DNA of 63,494 nucleotides, the filler included, from Octopus bimaculoides (Eukaryota): assembly GCF_001194135.2 (NCBI RefSeq). It is 7 parts of 6 records of this genome, joined end to end, with 100 filler letters (N's around TTAATTAATTAA, not from the genome) between each part and the next. Parts side by side here need not be neighbours in the genome. Positions count along the whole stretch, not along the records: positions 1 to 24,431 come from NC_068984.1; 6 more parts are not named here. One strand, given 5' to 3'. Made by a program: the position numbers and the translations under genes. The notes beneath the pieces were generated by a model. The model had not been told where the DNA came from. It saw only the letters and a list, made by a program, of their open reading frames with translations, and searched no databases. Positions 1-34,089 of the stretch are shown here, piece after piece; position 1 is the first letter of the stretch, and the number at the start of each line of letters is the position of its first letter.

Positions 1-97
1 AAAAGAAAATCTAAAACATATACGCTTTCTATATGCACATGCGCAGACAAAGAGATAAATGTGTCTGAGTGCGTGTAAGCGCGCTTGCGTAGTGTGA

Positions 98-165
<68 letters not shown>

Positions 166-316
166 GTATTTGCAACGAAACCTCCATGAACTAGAGACAC
201 CAAACAAGTACAACTCTCATGAAAGACAATCACGCAATATCAGTGTGCAGGAGAGTAGACAAGAAAACTATTGGAAACTAAGGAGCCAAGACACCTCAAC
301 CAAGTTTAAACATACA

Positions 317-347
<31 letters not shown>

Positions 348-448
348 TTGCACCTCAGAGCTTTCTGTATTCAATAAAACTGTGGCCCACAATGTGTTTG
401 CAGTGCCAATACTCATACCAACATTTAGGCTGCTTGATTGAACGCTTG

Positions 449-600
<152 letters not shown>

Positions 601-630
601 ATGCATATATGAATATATAGCTGAACTTAC

Positions 631-1176
631 GGTTGCATCTTCATCAATAAGGAAAGTTTTATCTGCGGCAAGAATGTCTTGAACTTGTTTAGAAATCCGA
701 ATTTTGGAAGGTTTACTCGAATTTAACAAGTCTTTCATTTCAAGTAGACCAGTTCCGAAGACATAAACAGCTTTCGGAGACTCTGCTATACCAATGTGTA
801 GATTGCCTATATGGATCGCAACACGGATCTCCAAGTTTTGTAGGTGAGGGTCACTGTTTTGAAAAATCCCTAACCAGTCTAATGCTAAGTGAGCTATTGT
901 AACAACGCGTGTAGTTTTGTCGCTTTCATTTTCTATTCCAGTTAGGTAAATCCACGTGCAGGTTTCCGATGCTATTTGACAGACATTTCTCTTAGAAGTC
1001 TTATCTTCAATTAGAAAATGAATTCTCTTTAAAACAGCAGCTACGTCATCCATTTGTCTTTTAGCAAGGAATTGTTTAAACTCATGCAGTTCTACTCCCA
1101 GAAAACAGTTATCGAGATGATTGTTCACCACAAACGGTTGATCCGATATGAGATTTGGTAAGATGAACTTTGGCAT
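631..1176 (-). other. Degenerate class III (guanylyl) cyclase domain
   Basis: Follows the receptor-GC signalling helix; aligns nearly ungapped by eye to the GC fold (F722, V754, G769, IAHLAL, RVAIHIG, VFG, KIRIS) but catalytic residues are substituted. Confidence 0.8.
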
Positions 1177-3208
1177 ATAGCGACTGAGCTGTTGCTCCAT
1201 TCTTTCTTTAGCTAAATTCAACTCGTTTGTTCTTTCTTCGATTCGCGTTTCTAAATGTTCAGTATACTCTTCCATAGCTTCCATCATGCTGTCTAAGACG
1301 CTTTTACGAAATGGATTTGCATGTTTAAGCATTTTAAGTATTTGGTCGAAAGTCGGCCGACTATTGGCCATTGAAGACCAAGCTATCTCCATAATCTGGC
1401 GGACTTGTACGGGTGTATCTTCGTTCGTTTCAGGACGAAGATTATTAAAAATAATCGCATTGAAGATTTCATCTATGCTCATACTATCAGCCAATTCAAT
1501 GTATGGCTCATCTCGGCTAAATATCTCTTGAAGAATAATAGCGAAACTATACACATCGCTCGTAGTTGTTGGAAATTTCAAAAAATTTGAGGCTAATATT
1601 TCTGGTGCCACCCAGAAGTCGCTGACTATAAAATCTTTGTCTTCTGGAATGCCATTAATTTGTCTTTTCCATGCCAGCGGATTTTTCAGCGGATTGATGA
1701 TAGAATACAAACGACAGTATTCCCAATCAGCTATTTTCACCGTCCATCTGCTGTCTATCAGACAACAAGACGAGTGTAGGTTTCCGTGAATTAAACCCAT
1801 TGCATGCAAGTAACTCATGCCACTCACAATATCGATAGATAAAGAAAACTTAAAATCTGTGGTTAGATTGTATTTTCCATCTTGAAGAATTTCGGTAAGA
1901 ACTCCTTTCGAACAATATTCATTAACGGCAAACCTGTCGTTATAATCGATTTCAGTTAAGCCATAAAACCGAAGAACGTTCGAATGTAAAATATGTTCTC
2001 GCATCCATATCAATTCCCGTTTTGTTTTCTGATCTATATGAGCAAAATCTGGCACATTTAGAAGTCTGATTCCAATTTGCTGTCCTTTCCATCGACCAGG
2101 CCATTGTAAAATCTGGGACAGAATCATTTCACCGTCGGGAATATCATTGATTGATTTGAACGATCTTATAGATTTAAAAAACGTCATCTTTGACTTCTTC
2201 GTGTAACCTCTGTCTTCGAAATAAAACAAAATGTTCTCGATAGCAATATTCCATTCATTATTGTTGATCATTTTTCTGAGCTTCAGCTTTTGGTAAATAA
2301 TGTAACCGAATAAAGCTAACAATATCAGGCAGAATAAAGGAATAAGAATCGCCACAGGCGTCTTCCATTTTTCTTCAACGTAATTCTCTCTCTTTTTATC
2401 TTCTGCCACCATATTCCACAACGAGGCTCCATTGCATTCCATGTGCAATAATATTTCTCTTTTAATTTTCGCTTTCAGTTCATTCGTTATTGGTACCATA
2501 TTTTCTCTGGTACAAATTGTTCTGGCATAGTCATCAGTTGTAAACCATTGGATGAAACGAAGAAGCTCTTTAGCAACTTCACATCTTTCAGTGTATTTCA
2601 GACGAATAACCATATATGTAAACCCTAGAATTGGATAGATTCCTTCAGCTGGAATATCAACAAGTGTTTCTGTGAACGAATGCTCCTCTGAACTCCGAAA
2701 ATACGTGTCTAAAGCCTTTTGTATAGAAGCTTCATCATCGGGGGAAATAAAATGGCCGGCCTTATTTTCTATTCTTGCAAGTGAAAGGTCGAATTTTTTC
2801 GCTTCGTTGACGACGACATACCCAATTGAATATTCGAAAGACGCTATTATTCCTGCCATTCCGGAATTTTTCTTCCCGTAATATTTCACAGCTCGTGGAT
2901 TCCATTTCACTGGTGTGTTACCGCCGTCTACAGTTCCGGCAGAAAAGGCGCCATATTGTTGTTTCCAGTTTTCATCAAAGGCACTCAGAGCTGTTGTGAA
3001 CATATTGGTAGTTCCTGATTTACTTTGACGAGCAAGGACGATTATTTCGGCACCTGGCAATATTACACCGGGGTTGGTTTGTAGGAATGTGGTGTCGTTC
3101 CAATGAGTAAATGTTCCATTATAAATACCAACAAGTTGTTCTCTGGACAGATTCAATAGGAAACCGTATGATTTCACTTCCGGTAGATTGTATGCAATGG
3201 AAATTGCC
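631..3208 (-). CDS. Coding exon 2 (2578 bp): rest of PstS domain, TM helix, kinase-homology domain, signalling helix, degenerate guanylyl-cyclase domain
   Basis: Acceptor ttattattgcAG|G (AG at 3210-3209) restores the frame to give PTMAG-AISIAYNLP, a continuous PstS motif; RQSKSGTT, SIGYV, NKAG, YPI; TM VAILIPLFCLILLALFGYIIY; HGNLHSS, WVAPE, DVYSFAII; SVLDSMM..MEEY..LE..IEERT..L; RVAIHIG, VFG, KIRIS; ends at consensus donor ACC|GTAAGT (GT at 630-629), phase 0. Confidence 0.92.
1324..2121 (-). other. Kinase-homology (pseudokinase) domain of receptor-GC type
   Basis: HSNVLRFYG, EYCSKG.L, DIVSGMSYLH, HGNL (HRD to HGN as in receptor GCs), IDSRWTVKI, WVAPE, SDVYSFAIILQEI, RPTF. Confidence 0.9.
2293..2355 (-). 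other. Single transmembrane helix of the receptor
   Basis: 21 hydrophobic residues followed by basic stop-transfer QKLKLRK. Confidence 0.85.
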
Positions 3209-3300
3209 CTGCAATAATAAATGTAATAAAATACGTTAAACAAACATTACCATTACTCTGTAACACACAAATCTACATCAAACAAAACAGTTCAAATATT

Positions 3301-3515
3301 GTTTCAAATTTCGGCACAAAGCCAGCAATTTCGGGGAAAGAATAAGTCAGTTACAGTGACCTCAGCGTTTAACTGGTACTTATTTTATCAGCCCCCGAAA
3401 GAATGAAACGCAAATTTGACCTTGGCGGAATTTGAACTCTGAACAAGAAGACAGACGAAATGTCACTCAGCGTTTTTTTCCAGCGTGCTAACGATTCTAC
3501 CAGCTTGCCGCCTTA
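3301..3515 (-). mobile_element. tRNA-headed SINE, family B (central GTCGACTTTGCCTTTCATCC..GGGGTCGATAAA..AGTACC domain; MetaSINE-like from memory)
   Basis: Homologous to copies at 10833, 14331, 16806, 45110, 59710. Confidence 0.85.
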
Positions 3516-3540
3516 GCAAAGCATTTGACATATTTAATAT

Positions 3541-3747
3541 TCTCTTATTCGTTTTCAGTCATTTGACTGCGGCTATGCTGGAGCATCGCCTTTAGTCGAA
3601 CAAATCGAACCCAGGACTTATTCTTTGTAAGCCTAATACTTATTCTATCGGTCTCTTTTGCCGAACCGCATCGGTTGTCAAGTGATGTTGGGGGGACAAA
3701 CATAGACACGCAAACACAAACACACACAGCCACACACACACACACAC
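3541..3747 (-). mobile_element. SINE family A, 3' half (cut by gap)
   Basis: ttcagtcatttgactgcggc..gctggagca..cgcctttagtcgaacaaatcga shared with many copies. Confidence 0.85.
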
Positions 3748-4105
3748 NNNNNNNNNNNNNNNNNNNNNNNNNNNNNNNNNNNNNNNNNNNNNNNNNNNNN
3801 NNNNNNNNNNNNNNNNNNNNNNNNNNNNNNNNNNNNNNNNNNNNNNNNNNNNNNNNNNNNNNNNNNNNNNNNNNNNNNNNNNNNNNNNNNNNNNNNNNNN
3901 NNNNNNNNNNNNNNNNNNNNNNNNNNNNNNNNNNNNNNNNNNNNNNNNNNNNNNNNNNNNNNNNNNNNNNNNNNNNNNNNNNNNNNNNNNNNNNNNNNNN
4001 NNNNNNNNNNNNNNNNNNNNNNNNNNNNNNNNNNNNNNNNNNNNNNNNNNNNNNNNNNNNNNNNNNNNNNNNNNNAACTTATTAATAATATTATTTCATT
4101 GCATG

Positions 4106-4258
4106 AAGCGGCGAGTTGGCAGAGTTGTTAGCACGCCGGGGAAAACCGCTTGGCTACATTTCATCTGTCTTTATGTCCTGAGTTCAAATTCCGCCGAGGT
4201 CAACTTTGCCTTTCATCTTCTCGGGGTCGATAAAATAATGAGAATTGGGGTCAACAAA
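4106..4258 (+). mobile_element. SINE family B
   Basis: Head gcggcgagttggcagag, B-box gagttcaaattcc, central domain. Confidence 0.85.
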
Positions 4259-5910
4259 TCATTTCCTTATATATATATATATATATATAAAGAAATGATT
4301 TGTTAATCAAGCTCTGACCGCAATAAAAAATCTGTCTGTGTGTATCTGTCTACCTACCTGCCTCTCCCCCCTCTCTATCTCTCTCTCAAGAAGTTTTTGT
4401 GTATGTGTGTATAGCTGTTTGCGTGTGTTATTGACTGACATACATATCATGTGGTGTGTGCTGGCGTCTGCCCACGAGTATAGTTATTAATGTGCGCATT
4501 TGTATGTCTTTACATTGATTTAAATCTATAAATGCGTATTCGTCTGGCTAACTTAAAATCTCTCCATACAGCGAAACCCAAATGTAAATCTCCCAGCTTA
4601 AAACCATTTTATCCCACCTGAAGAGTCTTCTATGCATTGTTCGTTGCATATTGTGTTATTACATCGTTCGTCGCCCACAAGGAAACAGTGCATGAAACAA
4701 TTGTTGTGGTAATAAATTTCTTTGTGTTGGTACATTCCGTCTTCTCTGTTTATCTTTAATATATATATATATATATATATATAGTGAGAATTTACAANNN
4801 NNNNNNNNNNNNNNNNNNNNNNNNNNNNNNNNNNNNNNNNNNNNNNNNNNNNNNNNNNNNNNNNNNNNNNNNNNNNNNNNNNNNNNNNNNNNNNNNNNNN
4901 NNNNNNNNNNNNNNNNNNNNNNNNNNNNNNNNNNNNNNNNNNNNNNNNNNNNNNNNNNNNNNNNNNNNNNNNNNNNNNNNNNNNNNNNNNNNNNNNNNNN
5001 NNNNNNNNNNNNNNNNNNNNNNNNNNNNNNNNNNNNNNNNNNNNNNNNNNNNNNNNNNNNNNNNNNNNNNNNNNNNNNNNNNNNNNNNNNNNNNNNNNNN
5101 NNNNNNNNNNNNNNNNNNNNNNNNNNNNNNNNNNNNNNNNNNNNNNNNNNNNNNNNNNNNNNNNNNNNNNNNNNNNNNNNTATATACACGTACATAAACC
5201 AGGCGGAAGATCGAAATTTGTTGGAAGAGGGACTATGATCGATATGCTAACGATAGTATCAGAAACTATTTTAAATTATGCAGTTTAATACATCAGAATT
5301 ATCACTAACGATTGTTTAGTTGAGTGTCACGTGAGAACACCGTGCGACATCATATTTAACCACTTTACACGCCTCACTACGCTGGCTAATAAATCAATCA
5401 ATAACTTTATACATGAATCGATTCATTCGGTGACATTGATCTTTTAGCTTGAATCTCGCCAAACTAAATCAACTCTGCATGTTATTATAAGATTAATTTC
5501 TTCTAAAAGATTGCATTTGGCGTAGAACGCAAGAAGTACTTTTGTCAACCTTTCAGACGCACATCTTCAGGTGTGGACAGGTGTGTTGGCTCCAGCTACT
5601 ACACAACTCTCACTTATGGCTTGCAGAAATCGGTAGTGCACATCAATAGTTACGCCTCAGTGCCTCACAATGCTTATTTTAAGGTAAGTATTGAAAAAGT
5701 AACCTCGTAAAATATACAACAGAACTTACATTCCAACCTTGCATTTTAATCTTAAATTTTGAACAGCGTTTCTCAAAGGGGGATTTATCGGCTCCTTTGG
5801 GACCCTACACAACCCACTTCAAAATGATCTACAATGAAAATGCTTTTTGATTCCATTTCGATAAAGGTTTCGCACGAAATGTCAGTAGACTTCTTTTCTT
5901 TTCCCATTAT

Positions 5911-6290
5911 ATCTTTTACTTGTTTAAGTCATTAGATTGTGACCATGCTGAAGCACCACCTTGAAGGAACGAATCGACAGCAGTACTTGTCACCATTATG
6001 TGTTTTGTAATGCCTGGTACTTATTCTATCGATCTCTGTTGCCGAACCGCTAGGTAACTGGGACATAGACACACTAGCACAAAGCCGTGGTGGTGGTAGT
6101 GGTGGACACACACACACATGTATGCGTACAACGGGCTTCCTTCAGTTTCCGTCTCGCAAATCCACTCACAAGGCTTGGTTCGGCCCGAAGCTATCGTAGA
6201 AAAACACTTGCCCAAAGTAGCAATTTGTGGCACTGAACCCAAAACCATGTGGCCGAGAAGCAAACTTCTTACTACACAGCTACGCCTGCA
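5911..6290 (-). mobile_element. SINE family A, near full length (tRNA head, CORE-like ccttgggcaagtg segment, internal CA/TA microsatellite)
   Basis: Collinear with copies at 17261, 20341, 39518. Confidence 0.85.
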
Positions 6291-6397
6291 CCAATTTTTG
6301 CGTTAATTAGTTTTGTGTTAATTAGTTTTGCGTTTTCATTTCGTTCTTTAGTCTGGAGAGAATGGGTCACGGCAATCTGTGCAACAAGCACGACCGG

Positions 6398-6456
6398 ATG
6401 ATGATGATGATGATGATGATAATGATGATGATGATGATGACGACGACGACGACGAC

Positions 6457-6510
<54 letters not shown>
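6398..6510. repeat. (GAT)n/(GAC)n microsatellite
   Basis: Direct reading; gives a spurious poly-Met ORF. Confidence 0.95.
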
Positions 6511-6511
<1 letters not shown>

Positions 6512-7890
6512 ACATTTTATCCACCATCTTTTGAATTTTTGTCTACCTGTTGTAACCTCGCACGCCGTCCAACTGTCAATCTCTTATTTCTCTCGATTCA
6601 TTTCAGGTATTTTACCTGGAAAATGTATCGAGGCCACTGTCAATTGACTCTAATTCTTCGTTATGTCATCAGACATAAATAATGCCTCTACACACATCTG
6701 TGACGTCCTGTTTTCCTTCTTTAAAGCAATATTTAGGAACTGAGATTTGCGAAAAATCTTTTGCTCAAAACTTACATTTATAAATCGGTGATCAACAGGA
6801 AAACGAATCTAAATTTATTTTTTTTATCGCTTATAGAGAAAAAAAAAAAAAAGAAAGGAAGTGACTTTGATATTTGTCGAAGCCTGGGAGAAAAAAAGGC
6901 AAGTTACTCCCATTCGGAAAACTCTGACCTGAAAGCCTCCCACAAAGTGTACTCTGCTATAGGCGCCCAAGGATCTCTTGATGGTGTTTAGCTGAGTTAT
7001 CACACCAAAAAATTTATCATCTAAAAACCACTCTCACCCCAGCACAAGAACCGTTCCATGTAATGCGTTGCCACGCATTTTCCATCAACCATATTTCTCA
7101 CAGAAAGACTTTTGCTGGCCTGAAATTGTAGTGAAAGACGCTCAATGTCTCAATGTGCCGCAGAGTGAGATCGAACCTGGGACAACATAGTCAGGAAGTT
7201 AACCCTAGAAATTTAGCTGATGCACTGTATTTCCTTACAATTGCTAATATACTAGTGGGGAAACACCTGTAATCGATTTAATTGTACGACTTCGGTGACA
7301 TCGGTGATTCGTCACCAATTACATATATACATGCATACATACATACATACGGGATACATACATACGTACGTACATACATACGTAAGTAATACATACATAA
7401 GTACATACATACGTACATGCGTACATACACACACACACATACACACAAACACACACGCATATTGTTTCATGACATTTTTATTACTTTTCAATGCGCTGTG
7501 AAAGCTCTTCAGTTTAAAGCTGGCTGTGTTTTGCATTCAGCCACTGTACAGGCGTTTTATAGAATATGCAATAAATCATGACTTATGTTGCTCATAAAAC
7601 AAAACTTGCATAATACTAATTACTTTAGCAACGAAATACTATTGTAGATTAACCGATTATCTATTATCAATATTCAAAGCATTTCATATCATGTATCTTT
7701 CTATGTATGCATCTATACAACATGGATATATCTGTATGTGTGTATTTATGTCTCTGAATGTGTGTATGTATATATATGTGTGTATGTTATATATTCTATG
7801 AGCTCATGATTCACGCACACATACTTATAAACATATACAGGTATACACACACACATACACACACGTGTGTGTGTGTAGGCGCATGGGTGT

Positions 7891-8180
7891 AGGCGCGTGG
7901 TCTAGTGGTATTGCACACTTACAATCACAATTTCCTGGTTTCGATTCCTTGACCGGGCGGTGGGTTGTTTTCTTGAGCAAGAAACTTTACGTTGCTCTGC
8001 CATCACTTTGACATTTGACCTGTGACACACGGTGCACTCTACAGGCAACGTTGATTTGGTGCAGAGGAGTGGGCGAATGTATGGCACACACTTTTGCTCA
8101 CTGTAAATAAATCATCTCTACTGGGACTTCAGTAAGAAATTGCGGAAACCTGGTCTGTCGTTTACGACAGGAGAACCCAC
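7891..8180 (+). mobile_element. Diverged tRNA-headed SINE (third type)
   Basis: A-box gtggtctagtgg, B-box ggtttcgattcc, followed by ttcttgagcaagaaact. Confidence 0.6.
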
Positions 8181-8310
8181 TGTAATGTAACATCTATCAT
8201 ATAACTAACAAAATCATGAAACAGCTGTAAACAAACGGAATAAACATCTATTCTCTCACCTCACTTCTCTTATCTATCTATCTATCTATCTATCTATCTC
8301 TCTCTCTCTA

Positions 8311-8360
<50 letters not shown>

Positions 8361-8659
8361 AAAGTTAACCTCCGATGTCAACTTTGCCTTTCATGCCTCC
8401 AGCATCGTTGAAATACAATACGAGTCAAGTCCTACAGTCGATATAATCCAGTAACTCCCTCCCAGAGAAAAACTGTTGACGTGCTCGTAAATTAATCCGT
8501 ATTATAAGAAGTTCCAGACCATCAGTATCCAGAAAGTCGAGGTTGTAGTTGCGTCATGAAAACTGAACAATATGTAACGTCAAAGAGGGAATGTGAATGC
8601 ATGTTTGTACGAAGCTGTACAGAAATCAGATCAGAATTGAAAATAGATTCATAGCTTAC

Positions 8660-8988
8660 CCAGCCATAGTTGGAAGCATTTTCAGGTTGCTGCTTGCATT
8701 TGCTGGTAGCAATGTTTCAGAGCCAGCAAAATCCACAAACTCATCCTGCTGTATGGCTTTCAGGCCTTTACTACTCCCTGTTACATTGTAGTACATTACC
8801 ACGTTGGTGAAAGCTCTTCTCGTGGGCATGTAATTGTTGATCCACTGTGCGTAGACTTCGGCTGGGAAACTGGCACCGACTCCTTGAACTGTAATTTCCT
8901 CAGAAGAAACTAAACTTGATCCAAGTAGATTCACTACGAGGATAACAAAATGTCGATGAGGAGAAATGAAAAAATAACCCAGCTTCAT
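8660..8988 (-). CDS. Coding exon 1 of PstS-ectodomain receptor guanylyl-cyclase-like protein (signal peptide plus N-terminal third of PstS domain)
   Basis: ATG at 8988; hydrophobic signal peptide FVILVVNLLGSSLVSS; PstS motifs VQGVGASFPAEVY, GSSKG, VDFAGSE, LPTMAG; ends at donor GG|GTAAGC (GT at 8659-8658), phase 2. Confidence 0.9.
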
Positions 8989-10268: not shown

Positions 10269-10700
10269 ATATATATATATATATATATANNNNNNNNNNN
10301 NNNNNNNNNNNNNNNNNNNNNNNNNNNNNNNNNNNNNNNNNNNNNNNNNNNNNNNNNNNNNNNNNNNNNNNNNNNNNNNNNNNNNNNNNNNNNNNNNNNN
10401 NNNNNNNNNNNNNNNNNNNNNNNNNNNNNNNNNNNNNNNNNNNNNNNNNNNNNNNNNNNNNNNNNNNNNNNNNNNNNNNNNNNNNNNNNNNNNNNNNNNN
10501 NNNNNNNNNNNNNNNNNNNNNNNNNNNNNNNNNNNNNNNNNNNNNNNNNNNNNNNNNNNNNNNNNNNNNNNNNNNNNNNNNNNNNNNNNNNNNNNNNNNN
10601 NNNNNNNNNNNNNNNNNNNNNNNNNNNNNNNNNNNNNNNNNNNNNNNNNNNNNNNNNNNNNNNNNNNNNNNNNNNNNNNNNNNNNNNNNNNNNNNNNNNN

Positions 10701-10832: not shown

Positions 10833-11042
10833 TTTTCCACTCTAGGCACAAGGCCCGAAATTTTTGGGGAGTGGGGACCAGTCGATTAAATCGACCCCAG
10901 TACGCAACTAGTACTTAATTTATCGACCCCGAAAGGATAAAAGGCAAAGTCGACCTCGGCGGAATTTCAGAACGTAAAGACAGACGAAATACCGCTAAGC
11001 ATTTCGCCCGGCGTACTAACGTTTCTGCCAGCTCACCGCCTT
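10833..11042 (-). mobile_element. SINE family B, full length, young-looking
   Basis: High similarity to copies at 14331 and 45110. Confidence 0.9.
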
Positions 11043-11337: not shown

Positions 11338-11710
11338 CGCAGGAGTGGCTGTGTGTATATACATATATATACATACATATATATATATTCAGTCCCACTG
11401 CGTGGCACCTTGGGCAAGTGTCTTCTACTATAGCCTCGGGCCGACCAAAGCCTTGTGAGTCTATTTGGTAGACGGAAACTGAAATAAGCCCGTCGTATAT
11501 ATGTATATATATATGTGTGTGTGTGTATATGTTTGTGTGTCTGTGTTTGTCTGCCCAGCTTCGCTTGACGACCGATGCTGGTGTGTTTGTGTCCCCGTAA
11601 CTTGGCGGTTCGGCAAAAAGAGACCGATAGAATAAGTACTAGGCTTACAAAGAATAAGTCCTGGGGTCGAGTTGCTCGACTAAAGGCGGTGCCCCAGCAT
11701 GGCCGCAGTC
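11338..11710 (+). mobile_element. SINE family A, young-looking
   Basis: aggagtggctgtgtg head, gtggcaccttgggcaagtgtcttctactatagcc, tail to gap. Confidence 0.9.
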
Positions 11711-11856
11711 NNNNNNNNNNNNNNNNNNNNNNNNNNNNNNNNNNNNNNNNNNNNNNNNNNNNNNNNNNNNNNNNNNNNNNNNNNNNNNNNNNNNNNNNNN
11801 NNNNNNNNNNNNNNNNNNNNNNNTATATATATATATATATACATACACACACACAC

Positions 11857-12700: not shown

Positions 12701-13267
12701 GTATAGATAATTGCTATGGTCGGTGTTAGCTCACCCATTCCAACCTATATCTTCCCAAAACGGCAGCAAGACTTTGCCCTTATTCAGGATTCCTCTTAAA
12801 TCATCTTATACTAACTTTCTCATCTACCCTCCTCATTGATTCTAATACGGACATTCAAAACACGGAAGTACATTTATGTATTTATGTTTATGTATTTATA
12901 TATATATATATATATAATTTATTATGTATTTATGAATTTTTATGTATTTATAAATTTTCGTATGTTTATATATATTTATAAATCCTTATGAATTTTTTAT
13001 CATGTCTCATATATGTGAACGCATCTATGTATATTATATACTATGGAGAATTTCGATAATCTGATATGGATTGCGACTTTTGAAATNNNNNNNNNNNNNN
13101 NNNNNNNNNNNNNNNNNNNNNNNNNNNNNNNNNNNNNNNNNNNNNNNNNNNNNNNNNNNNNNNNNNNNNNNNNNNNNNNNNNNNNNNNNNNNNNNNNNNN
13201 NNNNNNNNNNNNNNNNNNNNNNNNNNNNNNNNNNNNNNNNNNNNNNNNNNNNNNNNNNNNNNNNNNN

Positions 13268-14330: not shown

Positions 14331-14523
14331 CCCTAATTTTGGGGGGAGGGGGCCAGTCGATTAGATCGACCCCAGTACGCAATTGGTACCCAATTTATCG
14401 ACCCTCGAAAAGATGAAAGGCAAAGTCGACCTCGGTGGAATTTGAACTCAGAACATAGCGGCAGACGATATACCGCTAAGCGTTTCGCCCGGCGTGCTAA
14501 CGCTTCAGCCAGCTCGCCGCCTT
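14331..14523 (-). mobile_element. SINE family B
   Basis: Collinear with the 10833 copy. Confidence 0.9.
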
Positions 14524-16099
14524 AGACAGAGAGCAAATACCAAAAAATGCCTCAGGACTCAGTCATATTTGATTTGGTAAAGACATTGACGTTCCTATGT
14601 TAAAGCCTGTGACAGCAATGTACTTTTATTTCAGCTGATAGTGAGATCGATTTTATACCTAAGCAAGCATTTTGCATTGGCTTTCCTTTTTAATGTTTTC
14701 CCCAGTTCGATCGCGAATCGAATTCGTTTCCGCATTATATAATGTGGGGTATAAGTACTAACGTTTGATCGATCTGTTCCAATCACTTTGGTCTTTCATC
14801 CCCACCCGGTCCCGGCTTCTGTAGATGATATCGATAACTGAAGTTTATTTATTTCCATTTAACATGTCAGACAATTACCCTCCCTCTCCCCTCACCATCC
14901 TCCTCATCATCATCTTCACCACCATCACCATCATTGTCGTCAGTCCACCCCATATCCATTCAGTCACCATCGCCATTAAGTTCACCGCCATTGACGGCGG
15001 TACCACTGTTCTCTGTCAGCGGTCTTCACCAAGGTTTTCAAAGAAGAACGAACACTCGTGGATCGGTTCCCAAGGGATTACTTCTCTGTCAAGCAACTCT
15101 AAATTCCCCAAGACATTGTCAAACAAGGGGCATTTGCCTTCCTGCTGTCAACAGTTAAAGAGGCCGGCGTAAAAATTACACTTGAGCTACTTTCTCCATT
15201 CAGCAAATATACAAAGTAGCCATCTTTGACGCCCGAATAATAAACGACGACAGAACATAAAATAAATGTTAACATCTATTTAAACGGCCTATTTTCCTGC
15301 ACAAATTCAAAATGAACAGGAAAAACGATATGATAAAAGATAGCAAAACTACTTTAATGATTTGTCCTTTCTAAATAAATACATGGCTGTTTCTATCAAT
15401 TGCACTTGACTTTCAATGAAGATTCCATGTATTGTTTTCCTTGGTTACAGAGTATCTTCTATAGATACTCTATCTTCTATCTTCTATAGATCTTAATATT
15501 ACGTTGAGAACCTAGAACGCGCGGGCGCGCGGGCGCGCGGGCGTGTGAACTGTGGGTAGGTGGTTCTCATCAAATGGTAAATATATGTTCAAAAAGCAGT
15601 TACATTAACGATTAATGTTTCCAGAAGTGTTTCTATTGTTTAGTTTAATGCTTTGGGAGTGGCTGAGCTGATGTTTCACAACGTCCATCTCTTTCATGTC
15701 GAAGGGTTAATGCTTTCTAATGTCTATATATATATACAATGGACAGGTAACGAACAATTCGGACGCATGCATATAGACATACATGCATTCAGAGAGAGAT
15801 AAATAGATAGGCAGGCAATTAGGTACATACGTGCATGCATGTATCCAACCATCCATCCATTCAGTCAACCCTCCATCCATCCATCCATCCATCCATCCAT
15901 ACGTATGTATGTATGTATGTATGTATGTATAGAGTGTTTGAAGTGTTCTACAGAGATTGTATATTAAGAAAAAGGTGACAGTCAAAATTTTGGGTAATTC
16001 TTTATTAGCGCTTTCGCTCAATTTTTCTTGAAGAGTTCGGTTAAACAAAAGAAAACGCTAATAAAGAATTATCCAGAATTATGACTTCCTCCTTTTTCT

Positions 16100-16563
16100 T
16101 AATATATATGTACATATGTATGTATATATGCATGTATATATATGTGTGTATATATGCATGTGTATATGCAGGTGCATGTATATATGNNNNNNNNNNNNNN
16201 NNNNNNTATATATATGTATATATGTATGTATATATGCATGTACATATGCATGTATATATGCATGTACATATGCATGTATATATGCATGTATATATGCATG
16301 TATATATACATGTATATATGCATGTATATATATATGCATGTATATGTATGCATGTATATATATATGTGTGTATATGTATATATGCATGCATATGTGTATA
16401 TATGCATGCATATGTGTATATATGCATGTATATGCATATATATGCATGTATATGTATATATATGCATGTATATATATGCATGTATATGTATATATATGCA
16501 TGTATATATATGTATATATATGTATATATGCATGCGTATATATGTATATATGCATGTATATAT
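16100..16563. repeat. Complex alternating purine-pyrimidine repeat (ATATATGCATGT-like units)
   Basis: Direct reading. Confidence 0.9.
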
Positions 16564-16805: not shown

Positions 16806-17020
16806 TCCTTTCTACTGGAAGCACAAAGCCTCAAATTTGTGAGGTGGAGACTAGACGATTATATTGACCCCAGTGTTTCACCGTTACTTAATTTATCAAC
16901 CCTGAAAGGATGAAAGACAAAGCCAACTTTGGTGGAATTTGAACTTAGATCATGAAGACGGACGGAACGCCGCTAAGCATTCTGTCTGGTGTGCTAACCA
17001 TTCTGCCAGTTCGCCGCCTT
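16806..17020 (-). mobile_element. SINE family B
   Basis: Collinear with family B. Confidence 0.85.
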
Positions 17021-17260: not shown

Positions 17261-17636
17261 TTTATCTTTTACTTGCTTCAGCCTATAGACTGCGGCCATG
17301 CTTGGGCACCGCCTTGATGAATTTCAGTCGAACGAATCGACCACAGGACTTGCATTTCCTTTTTAATCCTGGTACTTCTATCGGTCTCTTTTTGCTAAAC
17401 CGCTAATATTACGGGGACGTAAACACACCAACACTGGTTGTCAAGCGGTGGGTTAGGGGACAAACACACATACACACACACATATACAACCGGTTCCCTT
17501 CAGTTTCCGTTCCACTAGACTTTGGTCAGTCCGTACCTTTAGTAGAAGACTCTTTGCCCAAGGTGCCACGCAGTGGGACTGAACCTGAAACGATGTGGTT
17601 GGAATGTAAACTTCTTACCGCACAGCCACGCCTGCG
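17261..17636 (-). mobile_element. SINE family A, full length
   Basis: Tail to tRNA-like head (gcaggcgtggctgtgcggtaag on minus strand). Confidence 0.88.
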
Positions 17637-19818: not shown

Positions 19819-20340
19819 TTTTAACTCACCTAAAAGTTTGTTTATGCCTAAACACTGCTTGGCGCTGATATTATGGTAATGTGTGTGCTTGCGTGTGTGC
19901 AATTAAAAGTAAAAGAGATAAATAATTCCAGGCAGACATCTATAAAGCACTCAGTGGTGATAAACGAATTCGATTAACTTTATGAAACAATCAGATATCA
20001 AAACATTCAAGTAGAATTTAACACCCAAGATAAGTTTTCATGCATGACAAGTGAATCCAAATATCGCTTGGAAGAATTTCAAGAAATTCAGAGTATTATG
20101 CTACAAGAACAAGAATGGAAAGAATCACATCTTTGATAATTGATGATCATGCTGTACACTATCGTTTCTATTGTGCCAAAATATTTACAATATATATCCG
20201 AAAATGTAAGCTAACAACGCAATCAAAGTAATCCAAAAACGGGCGAAATTGAAAGGGAAATAAGAAAATATAATTCCAGAGTTCGCATGCGAAATCAGCC
20301 ATAACTGAATTCTACGGTGGAATTCTTCGAAACGTAAATA

Positions 20341-20779
20341 TATTATTCTTTTATTTGTTTCAGTCATTTGACTGCGGCCATGCTGGAGCACCGCCTTTAA
20401 TCGAACAAATCGATACCAGGACTTAATCTTTGTAAGCTTAGTATTTAGCCTATTGGCCAGTTTTGCCGAACCGCTAAGTTACGGGGACGTAAATCCACCA
20501 ACATCGGTTGTCAAGCGATGGTGGGTGGGGGGGCGGGCTGCANNNNNNNNNNNNNNNNNNNNNNNNNNNNNNNNNNNNNNNNNNNNNNNNNNNNNNNNNN
20601 NNNNNNNNNNNNNNNNNNNNNNNNNNNNNNNNNNNNNNNNNNNNNNNNNNNNNNNNNNNNNNNNNNNNNNNNNNNNNNNNNNNNNNNNNNNNNNNNNNNN
20701 NNNNNNNNNNNNNNNNNNNNNNNNNNNNNNNNNNNNNNNNNNNNNNNNNNNNNNNNNNNNNNNNNNNNNNNNNNNNNCG

Positions 20780-21713: not shown

Positions 21714-23774
21714 CGTTTTCTCACCTGATCACTTCTGGTTTTTTGGTTTTTACTGATTCTGCTGCTGACTCTATTCCTAAATAGATCAAAATCAGAAACC
21801 CACTATTGATATTTCACTGGTTTGATTCTTCTGCGGCCATAATTCCTTATCAAGTCCTGTAATTACCGACAACTCCCTCGTCTCGCTGTTCGTTCAGGTG
21901 TTGCTACGACAAGTGTTTCTGTCGATTCAAGCTCATTGATTTTGTCACGCTCCCTCAATCTTCTCCTTTCTTTATTCTATCACTAAAGTACTCCTCAATG
22001 TTAACTCTCGGTCATCTATTGTGATTCTTATGTCTGTTTTTATTAGGTTTATTGTTAAGTGTGGGGTCAAGCGGACAGTAATATTGTTGCGGTTGGGATA
22101 TTTACTTCAGCGTTTCCATGGTGATTTCTGTACTCTTCATTATTTGAATTTCGATCTTGTTTTAGTTTGGTTGTAATGTTGTTATCTGTATGTATGTATG
22201 TATGTATGTATGTATGTATGTATGTATGTATGTATGTATGTCATGGTTTAGTTTTATTTCAAGATTTCTTGCCAATATAGACAGAACTGGTTTCTAACCT
22301 AGATCCAAGGTTTCTTCATTGGACTTTCAACATGTATGTATGTATGTATGTATGTATGTATGGAGCTAGTTCAACCCACTCTGGCTGAATGCCGACGCCA
22401 GTTCAAGTACATGTTTACGGAGTTATTGGCTACATTTTTGTTCTTTATTTTTTTGTGTTGACTGTTTATATAATAATGTTTTTCTAACATAGATCTAAGG
22501 CTCCTTCATTGGAATTTCAACGTGTATGTATGTATGTGTGTATGTATGTCTCTTCTATTTTTTTTTATCTGTTATAAATCTTCCACTGATGAGGGAGCGG
22601 GTTTCCAACAAAGATAGTGGGCTCCATCTTTGGGATGTAGTTAACAGAGAAATTCATATTTGGAACTTTAGAAAAGTCTTGCATATTTTTACTGTTCCAC
22701 TCACAGATTGGACTTGTACGAATCAGCCGCTAACAAAACCTCACGCTCCAATTATTGGTATGAATATGAATTCAGAGTCTGGATATAGAAACTGGCGGTA
22801 ATGCAAAAATGAGTATAATTTTTTTTCTTAACTGATAGAGTTTACATCGCACATATTTGTTGAGGAATTCGTCTTCTACATAATGATACTATATAAAAAA
22901 TTAAAAAAATTATCTATCAGATGCCATCGTTAAACCCAACTTACAAATCCTCTTTGAAAGATTACAGGTGGACACAATTGTACTTACAAANNNNNNNNNN
23001 NNNNNNNNNNNNNNNNNNNNNNNNNNNNNNNNNNNNNNNNNNNNNNNNNNNNNNNNNNNNNNNNNNNNNNNNNNNNNNNNNNNNNNNNNNNNNNNNNNNN
23101 NNNNNNNNNNNNNNNNNNNNNNNNNNNNNNNNNNNNNNNNNNNNNNNNNNNNNNNNNNNNNNNNNNNNNNNNNNNNNNNNNNNNNNNNNNNNNNNNNNNN
23201 NNNNNNNNNNNNNNNNNNNNNNNNNNNNNNNNNNNNNNNNNNNNNNNNNNNNNNNNNNNNNNNNNNNNNNNNNNNNNNNNNNNNNNNNNNNNNNNNNNNN
23301 NNNNNNNNNNNNNNNNNNNNNNNNNNNNNNNNNNNNNNNNNNNNNNNNNNNNNNNNNNNNNNNNNNNNNNNNNNNNNNNNNNNNNNNNNNNNNNNNNNNN
23401 NNNNNNNNNNNNNNNNNNNNNNNNNNNNNNNNNNNNNNNNNNNNNNNNNNNNNNNNNNNNNNNNNNNNNNNNNTCTTTCCTCAAAGTTACCTACCTTGTG
23501 CTTAAACAAACATTCCTTAAAAACCCCAAAAAAGGGAGTGTCGTGGAAATAACAGAATCTGCGATTAAACAGCATTGCAGTATTTAGTTTTATCTCATAA
23601 CATTCTGCAAAGATCGATAAAATAATTATTGATCATGTTTTGGGGAAAAATTCGTTGATTGACATATCACTTTGACATATTTGTAAACTTGAGAATTGAT
23701 AGACGAAGACTGTGTTTTAGGAGTTATTCATCAGAAGTTCATTCTTATTAACAACAATTTAATTAATTCCAGAC

Positions 23775-24240: not shown

Positions 24241-24279
24241 ATTTTAATAATTTGATATCCTAGCGATTTGCATTATATT

Positions 24280-24432
24280 CTTATTTTCTTTTAATTGTTT
24301 CAGTCATTTGACTGCGGCCATGCTGGAGCATCACCTTTAGTCGAACAAATCGACACCAGGTCTTACCCTTTGTAAGCCTAGTACTTATTCTGTCGGTCTC
24401 TTTGCCGAACTGGTAAGTTACGGGGATGTAAN
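24280..24432 (-). mobile_element. SINE family A 3' half
   Basis: Family A tail up to gap. Confidence 0.85.
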
Positions 24433-31152: not shown

Positions 31153-34089
31153 NNNNNNNNNNNNNNNNNNNNNNNNNNNNNNNNNNNNNNNNNNNNNNNN
31201 NNNNNNNNNNNNNNNNNNNNNNNNNNNNNNNNNNNNNNNNNNNNNNNNNNNNNNNNNNNNNNNNNNNNNNNNNNNNNNNNNNNNNNNNNNNNNNNNNNNN
31301 NNNNNNNNNNNNNNNNNNNNNNNNNNNNNNNNNNNNNNNNNNNNNNNNNNNNNNNNNNNNNNNNNNNNNNNNNNNNNNNNNNNNNNNNNNNNNNNNNNNN
31401 NNNNNNNNNNNNNNNNNNNNNNNNNNNNNNNNNNNNNNNNNNNNNNNNNNNNNNNNNNNNNNNNNNNNNNNNNNNNNNNNNNNNNNNNNNNNNNNNNNNN
31501 NNNNNNNNNNNNNNNNNNNNNNNNNNNNNNNNNNNNNNNNNNNNNNNNNNNNNNNNNNNNNNNNNNNNNNNNNNNNNNNNNNNNNNNNNNNNNNNNNNNN
31601 NNNNNNNNNNNNNNNNNNNNNNNNNNNNNNNNNNNNNNNNNNNNNNNNNNNNNNNNNNNNNNNNNNNNNNNNNNNNNNNNNTAAGGTAAATTTATTATAC
31701 ACATTTGTAAAATGGGTATCAAGTACTGATAGTCACAAGGTTTGCAACATGGAGTTTTGTGTTATTATGATTCAATTGGCATTGTTAAAACCTTTCGCTA
31801 ATATAATTCAGTACAAGCAATATTAGGCTTGGATATGTCACGACCCTACATGAAAATAAGGCCGGAGCTTGCAACATTTTCCACGGCATATATGTGACTT
31901 AGGTTACTATACGTGGCCCTCACCTTCAGCTGAGTGGATTGGAGGAACGTAAAATGAAGTTTTTTGCTCAATAACTCAAAGCGTCGTTCGCCCAATCTGA
32001 ACATGAAAGCAACGACTTTACAACCAACCACTATCCTAACCACTGAGCCATATTCATTCGCACAAACAATACATGAAAGTGAAGTAAAGATATTTTAAAA
32101 AGTGTTCTTTACACACCGAAATCCCTGTCTTACCTTTAAGCTAATATATGGTACATTATATTTGAAGACAGCGTTACCTAATAGCCTATAATGCCAAATT
32201 ACCGACACACGCACACACAGCCACTCATAAAACACGTATTATATTGCACATAATACGCACAGATACATAAATCTCGGTGTATTTGTTTTCATGCTGAAGT
32301 GTGTGTTATTCAGTTTTTTTTATGAGTAACATTAAGATCGAAAACAAGAAAGAGGTTTCTTTATTCATACAATGCAACACTCCCAAATAATAAGAAATAT
32401 AATACATCAGATACCAAAGTGTGAGTTAGTGTATTTATTTATCGTCGTATGTAAGTAAGCTACCGCTGTTCAACCATGAGAGTTGATTTTCAATGAAATA
32501 TTAGAAAAATAATTATTAGAAAAAGCTAAATAAATATAACATGCCGGAAAGAAATCTCATAATGATACAAAGCTAAAAGTTAGAACTAAAGAAAAAGAAG
32601 AAATTAAAACAAAACATGAAACTCTAACATTAAAAAAGGCGATTCAATCATCTGCCTTTATGTTGGCACCTAATGATTAATCATTGTCATTTCATTTTGT
32701 AAAGTACATATCAACAAAAAAGCAAGGTTCTTAGGTACGGCGATCGGAATCAACTTTCGAATGAATAATGAAGAATATCCTATATTCTAAATATCATATT
32801 TTTATTGATAAAAATCAAAAATGAACTTCGAAGAAAATACAAAACATGTGTCATGTCGTGTTCTGCATGGAAAAATATTGTTTATGTTGTTGCGTCCGAG
32901 AAGATGGAGTATCACTCGTAGAAGACGCTCCAAGTTCAAAAGTAGCACAAAAGTGGGTAAGTTTGCCTGGCGGGGGATTTCATTGAACGTTTATCAAGCT
33001 ACCATTTATCAAAGTGGAATTTTATAATCAATGTTTGGTCTAAGTTTTCAAAGAGAAAGACAATGTGCTGTACATGACAGAAACACAGATATCATGTGTC
33101 GATTTGAATTGAGGTAAAATTCGTTATATTTTGTGTGGAAATTAAGATGACAAAAAGTAAACAAATGAATTACATTTTTACGAATACTAATTTCAGTGAT
33201 AAGAATTGCAGTGATAGTAATGTTGAGTATATGGAACTTGAAGAAGCGATCGATGAAGATGGTAATTCTTGATATGATTTAGAGAAACATTCTATGTTGG
33301 GAATTGCTCATGAGACTTGGGAGCATAATGAAGTCTGTCTTTGTTAAAAGAATGGAGTAGCATGTTTGTTTTAGTATGGTTAAACATTACAAAATCTTGT
33401 CGATTGGACGTTTTCATTGATGAAAGTAGTGAGTACTACAGGATATATTAATCGTAGAGTTGATACAATATGGTGTGGTTATGTGGTCATATGATGATGA
33501 TATGATGCCGTGAGGAAAGATGATATGGGTAAGATGACATAGATACTTGAGAATGCTGTGCTTAGGTGAATTTAAAGTAGGCTAAACTCCACTTAAAAAC
33601 ACTTTTTACAATTATTCACCCCAACAAGTGACATGATACGTTCTGATGTATAGATAACTCTTCTTAAGAATAGTTTTGCTGGATTCTATTGTTATTAATG
33701 ACATAATATTTTGTGTTTTTTTCACAAAACGGAATAATATGTTTCATGAATTAGCAGCACAATTAAAACTATGATGCAATAACAGATAAAAGAGACAATA
33801 TTTCTTTTCTTTTTTTTCTTTCTACTTGACATACCTTAGTATCTTTTTACAGTCAACTATACCAATTTCCTTACAGTTTTCAGTACAGCTGAAAATTATA
33901 TATAAAGAAGGAAAGAGTTGTGCCTACAGTTTTTGAATATCTTAGGGGAATAGGGCTAAACGTTTGATCTTGTTTTGTGCGATTAGAATAAAAATTATAT
34001 AAAATCAAAGTTAAAGTTCAATCGGGTGCTAAAATGTGGCAATGACGCTCTCAGCAGTAAAAAAGAACTGTTAAGTGGTGGTTTTATTT

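Follow-up and report, generated by a model that had tools for sequence, protein, structure and literature searches.

A Receptor Guanylyl Cyclase Homologue of Octopus bimaculoides with a Dead Cyclase Domain and a Predicted Phosphate-Binding Ectodomain

Can the cyclase-like domain encoded at an Octopus bimaculoides locus still make a cyclic nucleotide, and if not, why has the gene kept it? The locus lies on the minus strand of the first part (NC_068984.1) of the window, the whole stretch of 63,494 nucleotides analysed here, and an earlier note on this DNA had called the domain a pseudo-cyclase. Receptor guanylyl cyclases are the textbook converters of a ligand into cyclic GMP (cGMP). The analysis showed that the segment encodes the cyclase-homology domain of a type I membrane receptor, the product of a genuine, spliced octopus gene. 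The receptor comprises, in order, a signal peptide, a PstS-type ectodomain, a transmembrane helix, a pseudokinase, a signalling helix, the cyclase-homology domain and a C-terminal tail. Judged by its residues, the domain is a pseudoenzyme, a cyclase homologue that lacks the catalytic residues and is under purifying selection. This is a receptor cyclase with a dead cyclase domain, in an apparently undescribed family with a predicted phosphate-binding ectodomain. The searched literature, of incomplete coverage, held no description of PstS-type receptor cyclases or pseudo-cyclase receptors, and the oyster kinome paper does not mention the PstS-ectodomain receptor family.

Class III cyclases work by an established two-metal mechanism. 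The C-terminal 223 residues were aligned over their whole length with human GC-A (structures 9bcv and 9bcs) by HMMER pairwise alignment. The register was checked by MAFFT with fish GC-C and family members and by hmmalign of 61 domains, and the three methods agreed on the register of the catalytic motifs. Residues are numbered here along the predicted open reading frame (ORF), which equals the protein numbering minus 98. Octopus has E, A, C, V, a gap, L and D at the seven positions for catalysis and specificity, where GC-A has D, E, D, R, C, N and R. The two metal-binding Asp are replaced by E718 and C762, the transition-state Asn and Arg by L834 and D838, the triphosphate-binding Arg by V826 and the guanine-selecting Glu by A758. 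The substitutions listed in the earlier note at five of these positions (D to E718, E to A758, D to C762, N to L834 and R to D838) were thus recovered in one register by HMMER, MAFFT and hmmalign. Its pairing of PRYCLFG with KAVYVFG stood in part. The Cys is lost, but the change from Cys to Tyr appears only if the motif is aligned gapless; HMMER places a gap at the Cys and V826 at the Arg. The triphosphate-binding Arg and the specificity Cys are gone either way. The C-terminal hairpin that carries the catalytic Lys in active cyclases is encoded by a third exon; the orthologues of O. vulgaris and Argonauta have a shorter hairpin that lacks the Lys. An alternative register that would restore the catalytic residues was sought and rejected: the β2-β3 turn has no Asp and helix α4 has no Arg, and the three alignments and the secondary structure of the model agree on this.

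Since none of the seven metal, triphosphate, guanine and transition-state residues is canonical, no cGMP or cyclic AMP (cAMP) would be expected from a homodimer. The domain should also supply neither half of a shared heterodimer site. The claim that it can neither act alone nor complement a partner therefore agrees with the residue pattern (0/7 canonical). Half-degenerate cyclase dimers are well known from the alpha and beta subunits of soluble guanylyl cyclase and from C1 and C2 of the membrane adenylyl cyclases. These, like ODR-1/DAF-11, resemble the octopus protein in keeping a cyclase domain that has lost some catalytic residues. They differ in that each subunit keeps the half that its partner is missing, whereas the octopus domain lacks both halves and therefore can complete no site.

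The domain nevertheless has the fold of a cyclase. The Pfam profile Guanylate_cyc (PF00211) matched at 35.2 bits against a cut-off of 21.9 (E 1.2e-8), and the O. vulgaris orthologue scored 39.9 bits. The match covers profile positions 14-164 of 183, and the last strands are encoded by exon 3. An AlphaFold model built on an 11-sequence alignment reached a mean pLDDT of 82. The model places E718 at the end of β1, just ahead of α1, T761-C762 in the β2-β3 turn, where active cyclases have G-D, and L834 and D838 on helix α4. In active class III cyclases, the catalytic residues occupy these same places. Foldseek gave E values down to 3e-13 and TM scores of 0.77-0.81 to GC-A and soluble guanylyl cyclase, at an identity of only 15-18%. 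The top matches were GC-A, soluble guanylyl cyclase, Rv1625c and rhodopsin-guanylyl cyclase, with bacterial and fungal class III cyclases among them and TM scores ranging from 0.6 to 0.8. The Pfam and Foldseek matches therefore identify a true cyclase fold, and the fold residues that had been reported as kept are indeed kept.

The ratio of nonsynonymous to synonymous substitution rates (dN/dS) was calculated by domain with the Nei-Gojobori method, comparing O. bimaculoides with the orthologous loci of O. vulgaris (dS 0.14) and Argonauta hians. The proteins of these loci are 95% and 73% identical to the octopus protein, respectively, and both genes are intact and of the same structure. The dN/dS of the cyclase-homology domain was 0.185 versus O. 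vulgaris (bootstrap 95% confidence interval 0.07-0.46) and 0.26-0.29 versus Argonauta (dS approximately 0.9). The pseudokinase had the lowest values of the protein (0.063 and 0.05), the ectodomain showed 0.28 and 0.20, and the whole coding sequence 0.17 and 0.15. A Fisher test on the substitution counts of the cyclase domain gave p = 8e-5. The cyclase domain is under purifying selection, weaker than that on the pseudokinase and similar to that on the ectodomain. Intact orthologues were found in O. vulgaris, in Argonauta and in two more cephalopod-like sequences (P0003 and P0004). The octopus gene itself has GT-AG introns, a conserved exon structure and intact orthologues on chromosome-scale scaffolds. 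Simple decay, for which a ratio near 1 and disabled orthologues would speak, does not fit these data, and selection maintains the dead domain.

The coding exons in the window were mapped by tblastn with the O. vulgaris and Argonauta orthologues, and two were found (Table 1). The first encodes the signal peptide and the N-terminal portion of the PstS-like ectodomain; the second begins midway through the ectodomain and stops close to where the cyclase-homology domain ends. The predicted minus-strand ORF (3243..355, 962 aa) is coding only in part. It overruns exon 2 on both sides (3211-3243 and 355-630), with 12 codons in intron 1 and approximately 90 codons in intron 2, where the (AC)n microsatellite is read through as THTHTH. 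The 859 open codons remarked on earlier correspond exactly to exon 2, between its AG acceptor and its GTAAGT donor. In the O. vulgaris gene (L001) a third coding exon (aa 970-1070, 32353-32655) lies approximately 12.8 kb further downstream. Tblastn with the orthologues did not find this exon in the window; at such a distance it would therefore fall past the edge of the octopus piece.

A decaying gene or an assembly artefact could be suspected here, because the assembly has many N gaps and microsatellites and the ORF overruns the exon on both sides. Such an origin is hardly credible. The frame stays open for 969 codons in two exons whose splice sites are canonical. Intact genes of the same structure exist in O. 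vulgaris, at 95% identity, and in Argonauta, at 73%, and the overall dN/dS is 0.17. None of the eight N runs in the piece falls inside the coding exons of the receptor gene. A pseudogene or misassembly is refuted by the open frames, the splice sites and the dN/dS.

Animal receptor cyclase genes usually have many exons, and one giant exon is unusual. The giant exon 2 is also present in O. vulgaris (L001) and Argonauta (L002), and the single-ORF gene calls of further relatives cover it (L003, 10001-12703; L004, 1001-3607; L005, 1001-3574). The giant exon is common to family members with dead and with intact cyclase sites, and many gene calls begin at one and the same ectodomain position.

What the receptor might sense is suggested by its ectodomain. 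The Pfam domain order is PBP_like_2 (62.6 bits), PK_Tyr_Ser-Thr (113 bits) and Guanylate_cyc, with no ANF_receptor match. Aligned with solved PstS structures, the ectodomain matched those of Yersinia (2z22, E 1.7e-33) and E. coli (1ixh, E 2e-31) over residues 2-283 of 321. The eight phosphate ligands of E. coli PstS, T10, F11, S38, D56, R135, S139, G140 and T141, correspond to S, F, S, E, R, S, G and T in octopus; six are identical and two are conservative replacements. Exon 1 encodes the first four of these, and exon 2 encodes the other four within an R-x-x-x-S-G-T motif. The ligand positions are near-invariant over 117 family ectodomains (R135 is Arg in 95/99, G140 is Gly in 88/95), and they are conserved in members with live and with dead cyclase sites alike. 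On this alignment, the ectodomain is predicted to bind phosphate. A search with the related ectodomain of Owenia as the query found its nearest bacterial sequences in Chloroflexi/Anaerolineae assemblies, at 37-42% identity to that query, and this suggests an old bacterial origin of the domain. Unlike bacterial PstS, the octopus domain is preceded by a eukaryotic signal peptide and followed by a transmembrane helix and signalling domains inside the cell. It also carries several N-glycosylation sequons and conserved cysteines, and it is split by a spliceosomal intron.

The intracellular part follows the plan of receptor guanylyl cyclases, in which a single membrane pass is followed by a kinase-homology domain, a coiled coil and a cyclase domain. 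The transmembrane helix is a hydrophobic 22-mer, and relatives have one at the same position. The pseudokinase has HGN for HRD, DWE for DFG and an Arg for the VAIK Lys. The last replacement is common to dead and intact family members. The signalling helix forms a long helix at residues 2-39 of the model. Its conserved positions are near-invariant across the family and are held in common with canonical receptor cyclases. GC-A/NPR1 (9bcs, 9bcv) is the best sequence and structural match of the octopus protein. It shares the order of transmembrane helix, kinase-homology domain, signalling helix and class III cyclase fold, and its pseudokinase likewise has HGxL in place of HRD. The octopus receptor differs from it in the ectodomain, which is of the type II PstS-like fold and not of the ANF-receptor (type I) fold, in the replacement of all seven catalytic and specificity residues, and in a gene core made of one giant exon. 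Full-length members of the dead group have a C-terminal tail that ends in a conserved motif (C-termini of P0001, P0002, P0005, P0006, P0010 and P0011 compared). The motif is NKI[FCYH]P[LIV]EQ in cephalopods and Haliotis and K[VI]LPL in pulmonates, and the ends are Pro-rich in others. Members with an intact cyclase site have no long tail and end approximately 20 residues past the cyclase domain. From its conservation, the end motif may be a docking site.

A phmmer search with the exon 2 protein against 1.84 billion representatives returned 387 matches at E ≤ 1e-30. Most of the best 150 of these align over all or large parts of the query, from the ectodomain to the cyclase domain. The matches outline a large family of protostome receptors built to this plan. 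Family members were classed by their ectodomain and by the residues at the catalytic columns. The intact group comprises 11 representatives with a PstS-like ectodomain and the canonical residues D, G, F, E, G, D, R, C, G, N, R and K, such as those of the annelid Owenia fusiformis (CAH1793096.1, P0041) and Priapulus caudatus (XP_014672517.1, P0044). The protein of the nematode Trichinella pseudospiralis (KRZ27753.1, P0121) also belongs to this group and is nearly canonical. L004 and L005 likewise combine a PstS-like ectodomain with a canonical guanylyl cyclase site. The Owenia, Priapulus and Trichinella receptors, all uncharacterised entries, share with octopus the ectodomain, the Arg for the VAIK Lys, the signalling helix and the giant exon. 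Over nearly the whole length, the identity to octopus is 32-35% for Owenia and Priapulus and 25% for Trichinella. The intact receptors differ from octopus in a canonical D, E, D, R, C, N, R and K. From their residues, PstS-ectodomain receptors with an intact site are candidate phosphate-regulated cyclases.

The degenerate group comprises 43 representatives, including the octopods, P0003, P0004, Haliotis, Lottia, pulmonate snails, the nemertean Lineus and a tardigrade. Its mean pairwise identity is 16% at the catalytic columns versus 21% over the whole coiled-coil and cyclase alignment, and the catalytic columns of the intact group are 100% identical. The Pfam cyclase score falls stepwise from 204-222 bits in the intact group to 104 in Lineus, 86 in Haliotis, 55 in P0003 and 35-40 in octopus, so the octopods are the most degenerate members. 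The degenerate sequences group as a single clade in a neighbour-joining tree built on the region from the pseudokinase to the cyclase domain (bootstrap 100/100 without the tardigrade and 66 with it), and the PstS-type receptors overall are grouped with a bootstrap of 76. A single origin of the catalytic loss is likely from this tree. As far as these sequences tell, the dead state of the octopus protein is inherited; it belongs to an old, derived clade in which the catalytic positions drift freely and is not an oddity of octopus. In its cyclase part, the dead clade keeps the signalling helix and, within the fold, the glycines, the prolines and the hydrophobic core. Columns conserved at ≥60% in the dead clade have the same residue as in active cyclases, with one exception (Met to Leu). 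A replacement active site was looked for in the dead clade and rejected, as no clade-specific conserved residues were found.

Catalytic residues are retained in a mosaic manner within the dead clade (P0003, P0005, P0007, P0008 and P0058). Haliotis, Lineus, Lottia and P0007 keep both acidic metal ligands and have lost the transition-state Arg, and the Asn is present only in Lineus. P0003 keeps the Asn and the Arg and has lost the second Asp, and octopods keep neither half. These remnants could be due to chance, or they could be the trace of a past heterodimeric stage like that of ODR-1/DAF-11. Some longer representatives (P0078, P0089, P0100, P0107 and P0110; 1500-2900 aa) match the query in 4-10 separate stretches, which suggests tandem family arrays merged by gene prediction in some genomes. 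Database names in the family, such as 'guanylyl cyclase GC-E-like' and 'atrial natriuretic peptide receptor 2-like', were assigned automatically and are misleading. In one metagenome, the annotation reads 'class 3 adenylate cyclase/ABC-type phosphate transport system substrate-binding protein'.

We propose that the gene encodes a receptor that senses a ligand and whose cyclase domain, no longer catalytic, now serves for dimerisation and relay, and we give this reading a probability of roughly 60%. Phosphate or a similar oxyanion would close the PstS ectodomain. The transmembrane and signalling helices would transmit the closure to the paired dead cyclase domains, and this dimer would act as a scaffold for dimerisation and relay. 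The output would be non-enzymatic and would arise from protein-protein contacts of the pseudokinase and of the clade-specific C-terminal tail with its conserved end motif. We favour such a mechanism because the phosphate pocket, the pseudokinase, the signalling helix and the skeleton of the fold are under selection without cyclase chemistry. The earlier note had offered a scaffold, an allosteric output and a dominant-negative partner as possible roles; these are hypotheses that sequence data do not separate.

The conservation of the phosphate pocket, the best conserved functional site, would also suit a receptor for phosphate buffering, uptake or clearance, in which the intracellular part serves only dimerisation and trafficking. 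NPR-C is a member of the receptor cyclase family that binds its ligand and makes no cGMP. Molluscs also encode short PstS-like proteins without a kinase-homology or cyclase domain (P0092 of Aplysia, 545 aa; P0172 of Haliotis, 436 aa; P0105 of Nucella, 498 aa), which by analogy with NPR-C could be secreted or membrane-anchored phosphate binders. NPR-C, however, has lost the whole kinase-homology and cyclase region, whereas the octopus receptor retains both at full length under selection. The most constrained region is the pseudokinase (dN/dS 0.05), and approximately 570 intracellular residues and a conserved tail have been kept in full across molluscs and a nemertean, far beyond what trafficking needs. 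A role as a ligand sink is therefore highly unlikely.

A dead receptor might instead act on a living one. It would heterodimerise with an active receptor cyclase, either an active PstS-type paralogue or an ANF-type receptor, through the signalling helix and the cyclase fold, and phosphate would tune the cGMP output of the partner. This is plausible because the interface elements are common to active cyclases: the conserved parts of the C-terminal half are precisely the signalling helix and the fold skeleton. Other protostomes have active receptors that carry this ectodomain, and a single half of the site survives in some members of the dead clade. ODR-1/DAF-11 of C. elegans, an obligate heterodimeric receptor cyclase in which each subunit gives half of one site, offers a precedent (PMC5225109). 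The mammalian receptor cyclases, however, all act as homodimers (PMC5225109). Since the octopus protein would leave any heterodimer without a complete site, the effect could be inhibitory only, and pure inhibition fails to explain the clade-specific tail and the very strong constraint on the pseudokinase. An active PstS-type paralogue was sought in cephalopods and not found, in searches too insensitive to exclude one: the profile of the active-group ectodomain was swamped by bacterial PstS and otherwise found only the short mollusc PstS-like proteins, and a pseudokinase profile returned mostly fragments. We consider a ligand-gated regulatory partner of this kind, which includes the dominant-negative role of the earlier note and is the main alternative, unlikely.

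Several points weigh against the relay receptor that we propose. The change from Asp to Glu at the first metal site is conservative and not a full loss, an acidic residue occupies this position in approximately two thirds of the dead clade, and a Glu there could still bind metal. Pseudoenzymes occasionally prove to use migrated residues. Octopods have a Glu in place of Asp56 of PstS. The exon for the tail lies outside the window, and the output route through the pseudokinase and tail is one that we only infer. In the tree, the intact sequences form a grade and not a supported clade, and neighbour-joining may draw fast-evolving sequences together, so a single origin of the loss is not proven. 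The first of these points, with the purifying selection on the domain, would favour residual or unorthodox catalysis through Glu718 and non-canonical residues, or a nucleotide that serves as an allosteric ligand. Against it, the second metal ligand, the triphosphate-binding Arg, the Glu, the Cys, the Asn and the Arg are all replaced by residues incapable of the chemistry, and the O. vulgaris orthologue has a shorter hairpin at the place of the last catalytic Lys. The former catalytic columns are not conserved above average, and no new cluster of conserved polar residues has arisen. Catalysis of this type is scarcely likely.

How animal cells sense extracellular phosphate is an open question. 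On a wider and speculative reading, the PstS-ectodomain receptors of protostomes would be candidate direct sensors of it, and in an old, dead lineage of molluscs, nemerteans and others both enzyme-like intracellular domains would have been turned into dead modules. One lineage would signal through cGMP, and the dead one through a new non-catalytic route that uses its pseudokinase and conserved C-terminal tail, or by gating active cyclases; this wider picture is tentative and rather doubtful. Pseudokinases are well studied, whereas nothing on pseudo-cyclases was found in the searched literature, the coverage of which was incomplete. A whole clade in which the full receptor and the cyclase fold persist but no active site is possible would be a clear example of a pseudo-cyclase. 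Live and dead receptors that share one sensor domain also form a natural experiment, as they can be compared directly with and without phosphate.

Table 1. Position and evidence of the receptor gene features in the window (residue labels follow the ORF numbering unless given as aa).
Feature	Position	Strand	Evidence
Coding exon 1 (aa 1-110)	8660..8988	-	tblastn, splice context, PstS alignment
Signal peptide (aa 1-29)	8902-8988	-	read from translation
N-terminal portion of PstS-like ectodomain	8660-8901	-	PstS alignment
Exon 1 donor GTAAGC	8659-8654	-	splice context
Intron 1, ~5.4 kb; two N gaps and dispersed-repeat copies inside	3211..8659	-	exon mapping, N runs, repeats
Exon 2 AG acceptor	3210-3209	-	splice context
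Coding exon 2, 859 codons (aa 111-969)	631..3208	-	tblastn, splice context
C-terminal portion of PstS-like (PBP_like_2) ectodomain	2383..3208	-	Pfam 62.6 bits
Transmembrane helix PVAILIPLFCLILLALFGYIIY, then basic stretch QKLKLRK	2293..2358	-	read from translation
Kinase-homology domain (pseudokinase)	1327..2034	-	Pfam PK_Tyr_Ser-Thr 113 bits; motifs from translation
Signalling helix/coiled coil (VLDSMMEAMEEYTEHLETRIEERTNEL...)	1138..1299	-	GC-A alignment, model, column conservation
Cyclase-homology domain, dead active site	631..1137	-	Pfam, AlphaFold, Foldseek
GVELHEF, residues 716-722, versus GC-A FSDIVGF	1078-1098	-	alignment
GAA, E718 (protein E816), first metal-binding Asp position	1090..1092	-	three alignments
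IASETCTW, residues 757-764, versus GC-A VETIGDAY	952-975	-	alignment
GCA, A758, guanine-specifying Glu position	970..972	-	three alignments
TGC, C762, second metal-binding Asp position (β2-β3 turn)	958..960	-	three alignments and model
KAVYVFG, residues 824-830, versus GC-A PRYCLFG; HMMER pairs AVY-VFG	754-774	-	alignment
GTT, V826, triphosphate-binding Arg position of PRYC	766..768	-	HMMER, hmmalign
TGLLEMKD, residues 831-838, versus GC-A DTVNTASR	730-753	-	alignment
CTT, L834, transition-state Asn position (helix α4)	742..744	-	three alignments and model
GAC, D838, transition-state Arg position (helix α4)	730..732	-	three alignments and model
Exon 2 donor GTAAGT	630-625	-	splice context
Intron 2 start; (AC)n microsatellite ~440-570	1..630	-	exon mapping

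The eight N runs, which are assembly gaps, lie at 3748-4075, 4798-5180, 10290-10700, 11711-11823, 13087-13267, 16187-16206, 20543-20777 and 22991-23473. ARAGORN found no tRNA-like genes in the window. Two dispersed repeat units of approximately 110 and 140 bases are present at 3403-3516 and 3530-3669, and further copies at 4108-4216, 5923-6050, 10937-11042, 11518-11710, 14413-14525, 16910-17020, 17277-17403, 20338-20474 and 24275-24410. The copies are 73-88% identical and lie in introns and intergenic DNA, often beside microsatellites or N gaps. The two units are probably elements like short interspersed elements (SINEs).

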